Sequence record: MT679221.1
DNA length: 64,000 bases
Reading direction: 5' to 3' (one strand)
In this document: positions 3,273 through 40,264 of the stretch, piece after piece
Numbering within the stretch: position 1 is the stretch's first letter
How the letters are laid out: every line of letters begins with the position of its first letter
Translations under genes and position numbers: made by a program
Notes under the pieces: generated by a model
Seen by the model: the letters and a program-made list of their open reading frames with translations, nothing else
The model's database searches: none
What the model was told of the DNA's origin: nothing

Positions 3273-3620
3273 TCGGTGCGCCGGGCAACGTGTTGCCGCA
3301 GATAGGCCCGAGGGAGCTGAGTGCACTAACACACGCCGGGATGCACCGGCACCTTACAATGGGAGCGCTGTCACCATCAGTGATGACAGGAGTGAAGGAT
3401 TCGTACCTCACTCGACTGGGCGGAAGCCTGGGCGTTCCCCCATCTTCACATCATGGCCGGCTTGCCGGTTCAACGTAGACGTCTCGTAAGAGATTTCCAG
3501 TCAGGCAACTGATAACGCACCTAAGCGTCGACCTTGGACGTATGGTGTCTGGTTAAGTCCCCCGAAACGGAAACCAGTAGGGGTGTGGTACGTTGAGTGT
3601 AACTATCATGATGCCATGAA
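3272..3620 (+). ncRNA. Candidate structured ncRNA (domain B)
   Basis: Nested helices 3449-3455/3607-3613 and 3470-3477/3589-3596. GNRA-capped hairpins at 3419-3428 and 3481-3494. Further stems at 3284-3297, 3335-3350, 3390-3413 and 3549-3577. Confidence 0.55.
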
Positions 3621-35190: not shown

Positions 35191-36897
35191 ATGGTAGAAA
35201 TTCAAATGACTTACACGAGTATGGGGGTACGGGTTGAAGTCCCTATCCGCCAGGCTGAAAGGGCCATACTCGCGTGGGCCGAAGAGAATATGCACGCCCC
35301 AAAGATGGGCAAGCAACATGGACGAATAACTACGGAACGCGGTGACGCGTACTACGCCCACATTCCGTCTTTAAGGACGTTCATTTTCCATAAAGTGTTC
35401 GCTGAGAAGATTAAACATATCCTCCAACGAGCAGCAATTGAATATGCTTTTCAGTACAAGCTGACAGAGCACCATCCTGAGCGAGGAACACCTTACTACT
35501 GTACATTTGATAACTACGGCTTCTCGATGGTAGAAAGCGATCCGGAATCACGCTTCTATTATCAGAACGAAGTTGTGGATGCGGCGTCCGATCCAAACCG
35601 ACCACAGACAATCTTTGCCATCCAGACAGGTCGCGGTAAAACGAAATCGTGTATGAAGTCGATGGTTAAACGGGGAACCCGCACCGCGTTGATTCACCGT
35701 CCGTCGTACGTTCCCAAATGGCTGTTTGACGTCTGTGATGATGAAACAGGACTTCGTATACTTCGTGACGAGGTATTGGTTTGTACTGGCGTACAGGCCA
35801 TCTACGATGCTCTGGAGATGGGTAAGTCGGGAGAGCTAGATAGACGTGGCATTAAGGTAATAATCCTCCCCACGGTCTCTCTACAGCGTTTCCTGAAGGA
35901 ATACATTAACACTGCTGCGACTAACCCCGTGGACCTGGATACGTTTTACGATGTTCTGGGTGTGGGTCTGGTGGCGATGGATGAGGTGCACGAACATTTT
36001 CACCTCGTTTACATGGCAGGTATAATGTTGAACCCGCCAGCATCGATAGAAATGTCTGCAACTCTTAAACCGGGTAGCAGTAAAGCCTTTATCGCGGAGC
36101 GGTATTTAGAACGATTCCCAATGGAGTACCGAATCAGTATCCCGATCATCCCGGTGGTTGACGTGAAGGCGTTGTACTATCGACTGGATGATAAGAAGTT
36201 TGCGTGGTGGGCGTCGAAGATGACCCCGTATAACCACAAACTCTTCGAAGGGAAGCTGATTAAAGAGAACTTGCATTTAGAATACGCGAACATGATCTGG
36301 GATGTGGTTGAGAAATCGTTCCTTAAACGGTATCAGCCTGGTCAGAAGTGTTTGTTGCTATTTGCCACGGTTGCAATGTGTGAGTTCTTTACCGAGTATG
36401 TGAAAGATAAGTTATCGCGTGACCCTGTATTCCATCCATTGATGGTGGCGAAATATAATGCAGGCGATTCGTATGACGACTTTATCCAAGCAGACTTCTC
36501 TATCTCCACACCGGGGAAAGCGGGGACTGCGGTCGATAAACCTGGGTTGGTACACATGTACATTTCAACCCCGGTAGAAGACCAGCAACTGAACGAACAG
36601 ATGGCCGGTCGTCCACGTAAGATTCTCCACAACGAGTGGGGTGAAATAGACCCAACGGTGTGGTTATTCCATGCGTATAACGTACCGAAGCATTGCAATT
36701 ACTTGAATGCCCGCCAGAAATCACTCAAGGATGTCGTATTGTCGTTCCGTATCGCGACATCCCCCTACGTTGTAAGGAAATCACATGCTCACTCCGCCGC
36801 GTCCAGCAGAGCCGCTGCCACCCTACATCGGAATGACTTTAGCAAGTTTTCTCGAAAACATTCTAAAGGCGTATCCCGGCGTAGAAGACGTCGCTAA
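35191..36897 (+). CDS. SF2 DExH helicase (phiKZ gp75-like)
   Basis: QTGRGKT Walker A, DEVH, SAT motif III, QMAGR motif VI; start reassigned to ATG 35191. Confidence 0.9.
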   Translation: MVEIQMTYTSMGVRVEVPIRQAERAILAWAEENMHAPKMGKQHGRITTERGDAYYAHIPSLRTFIFHKVFAEKIKHILQRAAIEYAFQYKLTEHHPERGTPYYCTFDNYGFSMVESDPESRFYYQNEVVDAASDPNRPQTIFAIQTGRGKTKSCMKSMVKRGTRTALIHRPSYVPKWLFDVCDDETGLRILRDEVLVCTGVQAIYDALEMGKSGELDRRGIKVIILPTVSLQRFLKEYINTAATNPVDLDTFYDVLGVGLVAMDEVHEHFHLVYMAGIMLNPPASIEMSATLKPGSSKAFIAERYLERFPMEYRISIPIIPVVDVKALYYRLDDKKFAWWASKMTPYNHKLFEGKLIKENLHLEYANMIWDVVEKSFLKRYQPGQKCLLLFATVAMCEFFTEYVKDKLSRDPVFHPLMVAKYNAGDSYDDFIQADFSISTPGKAGTAVDKPGLVHMYISTPVEDQQLNEQMAGRPRKILHNEWGEIDPTVWLFHAYNVPKHCNYLNARQKSLKDVVLSFRIATSPYVVRKSHAHSAASSRAAATLHRNDFSKFSRKHSKGVSRRRRRR

Positions 36898-37168
36898 GAA
36901 ACTCTGCACCGACGCCACTATCAACCAGGCGTTTCACTACTACATGGTCACTGAACATTACAGCGGCCTGTTCCTTAACCAACGCGGGTTGACGTATTAC
37001 GTCACCCGCACGTCAAGTATCCGTAACACTTCGTCGTACGAGCTTTATACGTACGTGTTGTGGAATGAGAACCCGGCCGGCAGCGTCGATCAGAATCCAA
37101 AGATGGCTTATCGTCTTTACTCTGAAAAATGGCACGATTGGGTGACTGTTCCACACGATGCAAGTTAA
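36833..37168 (+). CDS. Hypothetical protein overlapping the helicase 3' end (start 36785 or 36833)
   Basis: Open frame fills the gap to the next promoter; protein-like composition after 36833. Confidence 0.65.
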   Translation: MTLASFLENILKAYPGVEDVAKKLCTDATINQAFHYYMVTEHYSGLFLNQRGLTYYVTRTSSIRNTSSYELYTYVLWNENPAGSVDQNPKMAYRLYSEKWHDWVTVPHDAS

Positions 37169-37228: not shown

Positions 37229-37849
37229 ATGAGTCGTCGCAAAAAGAAACCCGCTTATAACCCACGTAAAGACGCACGCGATTTCGTCAAGGCGATGATG
37301 CAGTCTGTGTTGAAAAAACAAGCTGTGTTTATCGAAAGTACCGAATTCCTGTCAGGCAAAATTGATCGGGAGCGTGAAGTAACTGAAGCCATTGCGCACG
37401 AAGAGCTGAAAGCTTTCACGTTGAAAGCGCTGGATGAAGCACAAGCGGCATTCCTCGGCATGTGCCAACAAGGCAAAGAGCTGTTCGGTAAACTGATTGT
37501 TGAGGCGGATGCTAAGGCTGTGCCGGTGTTTGACATGCTGAACGATAACAGCAAAACGTGGAAAGAAATCAAAGACCAGTTCCACGTCGACCACACCGAA
37601 CTGTCCCTGATTGACCAGCGGGCGAATATGCTCGCGATGGATATCCAGGGCACCAGTATCGAAATCTTCTCCACGTATAACGCGAAAGTGAAGTTCGTGA
37701 AGCAGGCGCTGAATAACGGTCATACCGTGGAACAAGCCGAAGTTCTGTTGGCCGAAGCTTTGGCTAATAATTCGAAAGAACTCCCTAAAAACGCCATCGT
37801 CGATCACAACGACGTTGTAGTAGAAACCGAGGAAGCGGCTAATGTCTGA
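37229..37849 (+). CDS. Hypothetical coiled-coil-like protein
   Basis: Start reassigned to MSRRKKK (AAAGGA RBS); 206 aa. Confidence 0.8.
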   Translation: MSRRKKKPAYNPRKDARDFVKAMMQSVLKKQAVFIESTEFLSGKIDREREVTEAIAHEELKAFTLKALDEAQAAFLGMCQQGKELFGKLIVEADAKAVPVFDMLNDNSKTWKEIKDQFHVDHTELSLIDQRANMLAMDIQGTSIEIFSTYNAKVKFVKQALNNGHTVEQAEVLLAEALANNSKELPKNAIVDHNDVVVETEEAANV

Positions 37850-39812
37850 GATCCAAGATCAGCGTCCGGGTAATGCCCGTCGCCCTAATCCCGACCAGCC
37901 AGCCCCTGTGGCGGCTGCTACCCAACAAGAGATGATTCTTCCGACCGTGCCTGATGACGCGACCTCGGATGCAATCATCATGGCTATTAAACAAGCCAAT
38001 CCCGATTTTTCTTTTGCCCGTGCAGAAGAAGTTTATCACCAACACTATCATCGTCCGGAGCCTAAGCTTGAGCGTCCGACGTTTGTAGAAGAGGCGTTGC
38101 CTGAACCTGCTGCGCCTGTACCACCGACACCTCAGACTTTTGCTGAACAGGTGCAGGAGCACCTACATCGTGCCCCGGAACCGGTAGTAGAGAAAGCGCC
38201 TGCGGTAGAACCTGCTCCGCAGCCAAAAGCTCCGGAAGCGGTTGCACCGGCACAGCCGGCTGTAAAAGAAATGGAAGATGCAGCACCGAAGGTTCCGGAA
38301 CAACAACAGATGCGTGAGATTGACTTCGGTAATACCCATTTAGCTGAAACCGCCGAAATGGGTGAAGATGAAGCCGATCGTATTCTGACCCAGTCGAAGA
38401 TGTTGATTGGTCTGAAACAAGACCCTAACATCATTGCAGACTCCCTGCAAAAGTTCCTCGGTAATATTAAACGTTCACCGAAAGACGGCCGGCTGCTATT
38501 CGAAAGCCCTGAACAGCAACAGGTTTACGACGACATCTATCGTGCTTTGAACATGACCCCGCCACGTCTACAGGACGGCGTACCGGCATTCGCGGGTGCA
38601 CTGGACCGTGGTGATACCGCTTGGGAACAGCGCGTGATGTTGCCGGACGGTAAGGCATCTGGTGCTATTGCACCGCGTGACAATATGCACACTGGCGCGC
38701 TGGCTGCTTTGCGTCGTGTACGTAAGTCGGGTATTCCGAACATGGTTTGGTTGCCGGCCACAGGTATCTACGTGGGCTTCCGCGCACCGCATGAACGTGA
38801 CCTTTGTGACTTCGACATGCGCCTCACACTGGAAACTGCGACCATCGGTATGCAGACCTACGGTTTGATGCTGTCGTCGTCTTCTGGTGTGTACATGCGT
38901 CACATGGTTGAATTCGCACTTCAGTTTGTTACTGAAGCAACCATCGACTGCGCGGGTAACGATCTGCGTACGGTGCTGTTGGATACCATTGATCTGGCTG
39001 ACTACTGGCTGGTTATTCTGGGTCCGTTGCAGGCGAAGTGGCCGTCTGGTATTCCATGGACGCTGATGTGTGGCGAAGACGGTTGCAACCAGCAGGAAGA
39101 TGTGAAGCTGAACATCGCGCGTTGTATCCGTTTTGGTTCCGGACTGTTTAGCGACCTGCAGAAACAACTGTGGGCACGTCAACGCGGTACTGAGCGTCCA
39201 GTGATTTCTATCGCAGAACAGCGCGAATATATCGCGGCGCATCAGGTTGACCCATCTTCGGTATTTGAATACCACGACGTGCGTGTTGAATTTGGCCGTT
39301 CTACCCTAGGTAGCTTCTTTGACTCCACCGAGAAGTGGATTGAAGACGTTAACGCGTCAACTACGGCAGCGCTGTCTGAATTTGCTACCGAGCGTGAACG
39401 TGAATCCCATATGCGTTTAACTGCGGAAGCCCGTCGCTTAACGCGCTACGCTCACATGGTGAAATCTATCACTGTTAATGAGCAACGTGAAGTAAACGGT
39501 GAAATGCAGGTTATCCCACAAACTGAAACCGATACAGCGAAAATCGTTGAGATGCTGGAAGAGCTGTCTTCCGACCGTATCTACGTTGGTCAGTTTGAAA
39601 ACGCGATTGCTGAATACAACGAACGTACACGTTTAGCGGTATTCGGTTACATGGGTAAACGCTGCCCGGCGTGTGGTAAAACACACGGCGAGAAAGACGG
39701 TCTGTATCGCGGTATTGTTACCATCAGTCCGGACAGGGTTTTTTTCGTGCTCTCTCGAGTGGTGTCCGAGATTCAGAAATTCTTGCTGGATCAATACGCC
39801 GATATTGGCTAG
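37842..39812 (+). CDS. Conserved protein, possible T4 gp26-like hub/tail assembly chaperone
   Basis: 656 aa; P/A/E-rich N-terminal region; Cys pairs CGEDGC and CPACG; ends just after a U7 slippery run. Confidence 0.6.
   Translation: MSEIQDQRPGNARRPNPDQPAPVAAATQQEMILPTVPDDATSDAIIMAIKQANPDFSFARAEEVYHQHYHRPEPKLERPTFVEEALPEPAAPVPPTPQTFAEQVQEHLHRAPEPVVEKAPAVEPAPQPKAPEAVAPAQPAVKEMEDAAPKVPEQQQMREIDFGNTHLAETAEMGEDEADRILTQSKMLIGLKQDPNIIADSLQKFLGNIKRSPKDGRLLFESPEQQQVYDDIYRALNMTPPRLQDGVPAFAGALDRGDTAWEQRVMLPDGKASGAIAPRDNMHTGALAALRRVRKSGIPNMVWLPATGIYVGFRAPHERDLCDFDMRLTLETATIGMQTYGLMLSSSSGVYMRHMVEFALQFVTEATIDCAGNDLRTVLLDTIDLADYWLVILGPLQAKWPSGIPWTLMCGEDGCNQQEDVKLNIARCIRFGSGLFSDLQKQLWARQRGTERPVISIAEQREYIAAHQVDPSSVFEYHDVRVEFGRSTLGSFFDSTEKWIEDVNASTTAALSEFATERERESHMRLTAEARRLTRYAHMVKSITVNEQREVNGEMQVIPQTETDTAKIVEMLEELSSDRIYVGQFENAIAEYNERTRLAVFGYMGKRCPACGKTHGEKDGLYRGIVTISPDRVFFVLSRVVSEIQKFLLDQYADIG
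39740..39771 (+). promoter_or_regulatory. Candidate programmed -1 ribosomal frameshift signal
   Basis: In-phase T_TTT_TTC heptamer 39740-46; 6-nt spacer; stem TCTCG/CGAGA 39753-71; the -1 frame is open into ORF 39857-40228. Confidence 0.6.
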
Positions 39813-39856
39813 ACCAGGAAGACGTTCCGTCCGAGCAAATCATTACAACGCTCAAG

Positions 39857-40228
39857 ATGGATACCACCTCTCTCTTCAAGCAGCGTAGCACACGTCCTAT
39901 TACGTATCAGGAAGCCCATAACGAGCTTCTGGAAGCGTATGACCGTACACTGGCTCTTAATACCGGCGACCATCAGGTAGGATTGTCGGATTTTGAAAAC
40001 CCGGTATACGGTAGTCTTTACGATATCTGGTACGCCACTTACTTACGTGAAGAGGTCGGTGAAAACTACCGGATGTCGATAGACGAGTTCCTCGACCGCC
40101 CCCGCTGGCAGATACTGCTGATGCTCGACAATATCCGTCGTCGCAAAGCGATTATCGCCAAAGCCGGCGAGCAGGTGGCAGGTGAACGTGCGTTAAAGGA
40201 GCTGGAGAAAGATCTGACGGGACATTAA
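39857..40228 (+). CDS. Small protein, possible T4 gp51/gpT-like chaperone C-terminal module
   Basis: 123 aa; no SD before the ATG; MSIDEFLDRPRWQILLML resembles the S-x-x-E-x-x-x-x-P-x-W pattern. Confidence 0.6.
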   Translation: MDTTSLFKQRSTRPITYQEAHNELLEAYDRTLALNTGDHQVGLSDFENPVYGSLYDIWYATYLREEVGENYRMSIDEFLDRPRWQILLMLDNIRRRKAIIAKAGEQVAGERALKELEKDLTGH

Positions 40229-40236
40229 TAGAAATT

Positions 40237-40264
40237 CGGGGCTTCGGCCCCGTTTTCTTTTTTT
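40237..40264 (+). terminator. Intrinsic terminator
   Basis: CGGGGC-TTCG-GCCCCG plus T tract. Confidence 0.85.

Follow-up and report, generated by a model that had tools for sequence, protein, structure and literature searches.

A conserved U run as the site of a probable programmed −1 frameshift in a core gene of the Chimalliviridae

The locus and its gene neighborhood

The stretch of DNA analyzed here (hereinafter the window) comprises 64,000 nucleotides of record MT679221.1. Over the region of interest the identity is 100% to Proteus phage 7 (MT679221), an SPN3US-like chimallivirus, and 99% to Salmonella phage SPN3US (genus Seoulvirus). The region contains two consecutive ORFs, here termed A and B, in a neighborhood that includes a helicase, homologs of gp78 and gp79, and RNA polymerase subunits. 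ORF A belongs to the family typified by phiKZ gp77, with which the 201phi2-1 record equates its own ORF A homolog as well as EL gp47. This family, common to all nucleus-forming jumbo phages, has been listed as core gene cg18 (phiKZ gp077, RAY gp267) under the label “hypothetical protein” (Prichard et al. 2023 supplement, PMC10299810). The genes called “gp77” in the papers on Goslar and PCH45 are unrelated to it and were set aside. Across relatives, ORF A is followed by a small ORF, namely gp76 in phiKZ, gp40 in SPN3US and gp266 in RAY. Further upstream in the window, the helicase ORF shares about 110 nt at its 3′ end with a 127-aa ORF in a different frame (36785–37168), which carries an annotation in SPN3US. 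The features relevant to the following discussion are:

37842–39812, plus strand: ORF A, zero frame, 656 aa, the predicted short isoform; homolog of phiKZ gp77, SPN3US gp39 and RAY gp267, with an AlphaFold model
39069–39086, plus strand: first cysteine pair, C410/C415, nearly invariant
39663–39674, plus strand: second cysteine pair, C608/C611, nearly invariant, about 25 codons before the heptamer
39740–39746, plus strand: slippery heptamer T_TTT_TTC, in phase, at the invariant Phe634–Phe635 (from the sequence and orthologue comparison)
39746–40228, plus strand: −1 coding stretch of 160 codons and a stop, the predicted C-terminal extension of the long isoform, which takes in the part annotated as “intergenic”
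39747–39812, plus strand: dual-coding overlap of the 21-codon zero-frame tail with the start of the extension; variation low at all three codon positions
39753–39771, plus strand: candidate 5-bp hairpin, TCTCG (39753–39757) with CGAGA (39767–39771); weak, with no covariation support
39857–40228, plus strand: ORF B (SPN3US gp40) with its annotated limits, 123 aa; the ATG lacks conservation in other genera
40237–40262, plus strand: intrinsic terminator with six G-C pairs and a T tail, just past the stop of ORF B

There is no terminator between A and B, and the two would be carried on one transcription unit.

Frame geometry at the slip site

ORF B lies in the −1 frame relative to ORF A, and this −1 frame is open from 39680. 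The two open frames overlap at 39680–39812, and this stretch includes an in-phase heptamer of the X_XXY_YYZ type, with the zero-frame codons GTT TTT TTC setting the phase of T_TTT_TTC. A −1 shift at this point would join the first 635 residues of ORF A to 160 residues read from the −1 frame. A first-pass annotation made from the sequence alone had drawn attention to this configuration; its coordinates and frames for ORF A, the heptamer, ORF B and the open −1 frame were all correct on re-checking, and its predicted fusion of 795 aa was recovered upon recomputation. Likewise, the ATG of ORF B lacks a Shine-Dalgarno sequence as had been claimed, with no GGAG-type motif in the 24 nt before 39857. 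Taken alone, such a heptamer is unremarkable, since 49 in-phase XXXYYYZ heptamers occur in the long open frames of the window. The other runs of 8–9 T or A in the window all lie outside long open frames.

Conservation across relatives

We assembled 67 related loci from GenBank phages, IMG/VR and metagenomes. Many of these are redundant, but at 50% protein identity they still fall into no fewer than 16 lineages: the first 51 loci form 28 clusters at 90%, 16 at 70% and 12 at 50% protein identity, and four lineages were added afterwards. The records of Salmonella phages SPFM5–SPFM15 and SPFM20 were left out on account of their fragmented matches. In these records at least 30 short pieces match the region, the proteins are broken up, and the quality of the deposited sequence looks low.

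The Phe-Phe dipeptide at the heptamer is invariant, and from it a −1 extension of 151–176 codons can be read in 66 of the 67 loci, as compared to 0–88 codons in the +1 frame, which served as the control. The sole exception is SEGD1, which is also the only locus where the downstream ORF is not in the −1 frame. The motif T_TTT_TT(C/T) is found in phase in 61 of the 67 loci and in 14 of the 16 lineages. Given that 9–18% of the other Phe-Phe dipeptides in these genomes form the motif, its conservation exceeds chance. The run itself ranges from 5 to 8 T across the loci, with T7 in the window and T8 in RAY, RSL2 and Proteus phage 10.

The departures from the motif fall into two sets. Three loci, from FLC9 and two metagenome relatives of 201phi2-1, display G_TTT_TTT instead, and in the Vibrio phages pVa-21 and pVp-JHP1101 the run is degraded to T5 at a homologous Leu-Phe. 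FLC9 and the two other G_TTT_TTT lineages keep a −1 extension of 161–175 codons, and in a locus of this group with 57% G+C both Phe codons are still TTT. The pVa-21 clade possesses an in-phase A_AAT_TTG seven codons after the T5 run and inside a 61-nt overlap (locus positions 3348–3411), which may represent a relocated slip site.

The boundaries within which a shift could take place vary between lineages. At the latest, the −1 frame opens 12 nt upstream of the run, or 8 nt upstream in the case of the degraded T5 run of pVa-21; at the earliest, the zero frame stops 8 codons past the run. As the windows of possible shift across the lineages intersect at the U run, the shift is pinned to it. Thus, the comparison of orthologs that the first-pass annotation had proposed as a check recovers both the conserved U-run heptamer and the open −1 frame, and its central suggestion of a programmed −1 shift joining ORF A to ORF B receives strong, family-wide comparative support.

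Coding signal in the −1 frame

The per-position entropy of the alignment provides a second line of evidence. Upstream of the heptamer, variation is highest at the third codon position of the zero frame. In the annotated intergenic part (39813–39856) it is highest at the third position of the −1 frame (entropy 0.91/0.50/1.51), and in the intervening overlap (39747–39812) all three codon positions are constrained. By the comparative evidence, the downstream frame is protein-coding from the slip site onward, without a start of its own. In the SPN3US-like group the zero-frame tail after the heptamer is also conserved, being always 21 codons long with a fixed stop, and AlphaFold models it as a confident helix (residues 630–655). 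Given the constraint on the overlap and this constant, helical tail, both the end of ORF A and the −1 extension appear to be under selection. The extension is also recognizably homologous over large distances: a profile of the enteric-phage versions matches one built from distant clades (phiKZ, 201phi2-1, RAY, RSL2, Haymo, Proteus phage 10 and IMG/VR contigs) with an hhalign probability of 98% and E = 1.5e-13.

The recoding mechanism and competing explanations

On the strength of these comparative patterns, we consider it probable that programmed −1 recoding at the U run occurs family-wide in the Chimalliviridae and generates a short and a long isoform of the protein. This recoding is most likely ribosomal. 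Host ribosomes translating ORF A would encounter U_UUU_UUC with tRNA-Phe in both the P and A sites, and a fraction of them would slip back by one base, with both tRNAs re-pairing perfectly, and continue for 160 codons in the −1 frame. The unshifted ribosomes would make the 656-aa short form ending in the conserved 21-residue helix, which in the 795-aa long form would be replaced by a probably flexible linker and a helical domain of about 100 residues.

Two observations count against such a ribosomal mechanism. First, the search for a conserved stimulatory RNA structure by consensus folding, covariation and Rfam found none. The first-pass annotation had pointed to a hairpin downstream of the heptamer: its 6-nt spacer and its 5-bp stem, which encloses a 9-nt loop, do exist, and 12 of 16 distinct relatives have the stem intact; however, it shows no covariation, and its standing as a conserved element is not supported. 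An RNAalifold consensus structure was tested and found unsupported (consensus fold −1.15 kcal/mol; downstream fold z = −0.54). The region has no match in Rfam, no RNA structure is common to the distant clades, and no upstream element was seen at a dnaX-like spacing. Second, under the classic tandem model, less efficient slippage would be expected at the G_TTT_TTT and pVa-21 sites.

These same observations are relevant to the principal alternative, which is transcriptional slippage: either the phage or the host RNA polymerase would add one U to some of the transcripts, from which the same long protein would be translated. That the conserved element is a homopolymer run, that no conserved downstream RNA stimulator was found, and that the G_TTT_TTT lineages retain the run but not the full heptamer for tandem slippage are all as expected of a slipping polymerase. 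However, in the known bacterial cases efficient transcriptional slippage involves runs of about 9 or more, in contrast to the 5–8 U seen here. Moreover, the phase of the run always permits tandem re-pairing of tRNAs, though the invariant Phe-Phe partly forces this phase. We therefore regard transcriptional slippage as unlikely, if still worth serious consideration. The particular version in which the phage's own, unusual multisubunit RNA polymerase slips on the U run within the phage nucleus, and thereby sets the ratio of the isoforms, appears to us similarly doubtful.

The conventional reading, in which A and B are two separate genes with B being initiated alone or by re-initiation past the stop of A, agrees with the annotation of two CDSs in every GenBank record but one, and with the presence of an ATG near codon 35–37 of the −1 stretch in the window and some other genera. 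However, this start is not kept across the family: in most genera the position of the window's ATG is occupied by a non-start Leu codon (CTN or TTA), and in several lineages the first ATG, GTG or TTG appears only at codon 60–68, past the invariant residues D39–H58. The annotated starts of B differ from record to record. Across the SPN3US-like genera, exactly 37 codons separate the heptamer from the first block conserved in B. Together with the missing Shine-Dalgarno sequence, and with invariant residues and −1 codon periodicity that extend upstream of any possible start, this makes separate genes a very improbable account of the locus.

No natural fusion of A and B is found among 52 close homologs. 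A HMMER search recovered 1275 representative clusters at E up to 0.001; among the best 150 of these, no protein apart from the metagenome protein P0084 has an added extension domain, the rest ending about 10–65 residues past the profile match, which is too few for it. A profile search of proteins with the mixed alignment returned close relatives only. SEGD1, whose record is the only one in GenBank without two CDSs, and P0084 both read through owing to a short divergent stretch upstream of the run. Since this stretch removes invariant zero-frame residues, we do not count them as natural fusions; they are probably sequence or assembly errors or defective variants. Hence, although the single 795-aa CDS of SEGD1 and the read-through of P0084 might suggest that a homopolymer sequencing error has split one real gene into A and B, this is scarcely credible, as the run length and frame layout seen here turn up again in over 70 phage records deposited by many laboratories and in contigs from IMG/VR and metagenomes, conservation extends to the zero-frame tail with its fixed stop 21 codons past the heptamer, and those two sequences differ upstream of the run with the loss of invariant zero-frame residues.

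Protein features and functional assignment

The AlphaFold model of ORF A is of good quality (pLDDT 79, pTM 0.71). Its first ~165 residues (37842–38340) are predicted to be disordered and are rich in Pro, Ala and Glu; the phiKZ-type homologs (~533 aa) are shorter and have no counterpart to this region. The cysteine pairs that the first-pass annotation had noted upstream of the slip site are real and nearly invariant in relatives. They are separated by about 200 residues in the ORF A sequence, and may come together to constitute a four-cysteine metal site.

The functional labels that had been proposed for the two ORFs fared less well. A lambda G/GT-type tail chaperone identity is not supported: the pair has helicase and RNA polymerase genes around it, and no chaperone family matches it in Pfam, PHROGs or PDB, with the best chaperone-named Foldseek match having E = 0.46. 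Searches of ORF A with Foldseek against PDB gave nothing better than E = 0.65. Against BFVD they recovered chimallivirus homologs, along with an uncultured myovirus “Baseplate protein” (E = 5.5e-22), and a weak match to the predicted structure of a “Baseplate hub assembly protein, bacteriophage T4-like” from an uncultured phage (E = 5.3e-4; TM 0.26 for the query and 0.50 for the target). Two GenBank records also carry the T4-like baseplate hub assembly label. However, when 21 diverse members were compared with Pfam and PHROGs by hmmscan, no functional family was identified, including any of the gp26 type. Thus, the proposed likeness to T4 gp26 comes down to that one weak Foldseek match and is not established.

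For ORF B and the extension, Pfam, PHROGs and PDB yielded no named match that would back the proposed likeness to T4 gp51. With a pLDDT of 58, the extension is modeled too poorly to make a fold search meaningful. Sequence searches of PDB returned only noise, including a match with E = 0.0049 to an uncharacterized protein. Over residues 13–78 (39782–39979), the profile of the extension gave a non-significant match (E = 0.16) to the eukaryotic DNA primase small subunit, which we mention as a lead only.

The text of the Goslar virion paper does not mention gp081, and in the 201phi2-1 record gp136 has no mass-spectrometry flag, while its neighbors are flagged. The Grad-seq supplements have no entry for these genes. 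phiKZ gp077 was among 15 early-expressed proteins that have been screened (PMC11849849). As far as published models and proteomes show, the ORF A protein is absent from the virion, and it is possible that it functions as a non-virion assembly factor.

Comparison with known recoding systems

The nearest parallel is the frameshift by which tailed phages such as lambda reportedly make their G/GT tail assembly chaperones. In both, a −1 shift, here a proposed one, occurs on a heptamer close to the 3′ end of an ORF and leads to a second isoform with a C-terminal extension, and the arrangement persists in very divergent phages, frequently with no obvious RNA stimulator. They differ in that the genes for tail tube and tape measure do not flank the ORF A/B pair, that ORF A codes for 656 aa as opposed to about 130 aa, and that neither sequence nor fold matches link the pair to chaperone families.

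In Escherichia coli dnaX, which produces tau and gamma, a homopolymer-type heptamer in a conserved gene similarly yields isoforms that differ in their C-terminal domains. However, the dnaX shift truncates the product where that of ORF A would extend it, and dnaX requires an upstream Shine-Dalgarno-like element and a strong hairpin, neither of which was found here. The orfA–orfB pairs of the IS3 family resemble the present locus in that an A or U run links their overlapping −1 ORFs. Slippage on A/U runs has been documented both for ribosomes and for polymerases, as in IS elements and Thermus dnaX. The products of IS elements are, however, transposases, and the runs on which transcription slips in these elements and in Thermus dnaX are longer than the 5–8 U seen here. 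In T4, gene 26, which codes for a baseplate hub protein, is followed by gene 51. Like the ORF A protein, T4 gp26 is not seen in mature virion models, but it is far smaller, and we know of no recoding in its gene.

Implications for the Chimalliviridae

Our search of the literature found no report of a −1 frameshift in a gene of the phiKZ gp77 type, in agreement with the earlier statement that none had been described for phiKZ-like phages. The proposed shift would add a further example of a known mechanism, this time in a core gene of the Chimalliviridae, a family that has been intensively studied even as about half of its core genes have no known function. For every family member the shift would alter how core gene cg18 (phiKZ gp77) is annotated, with the variable small ORF (phiKZ gp76, SPN3US gp40, RAY gp266) becoming a conserved domain of a longer isoform rather than a separate gene. 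Core-genome lists, knock-down or transposon screens, and proteomic databases that split the two ORFs would consequently misread both.

Assembly chaperones and clamp-loader-like machines typically have such a design of two isoforms in a fixed geometry, which offers a concrete lead to the function of cg18. If polymerase slippage were to be the true mechanism, it would be a case of programmed transcriptional realignment conserved over a whole virus family and setting the isoform ratio of a core protein. The locus also lends itself as a natural test of recoding in phages whose transcription is kept physically apart from translation.
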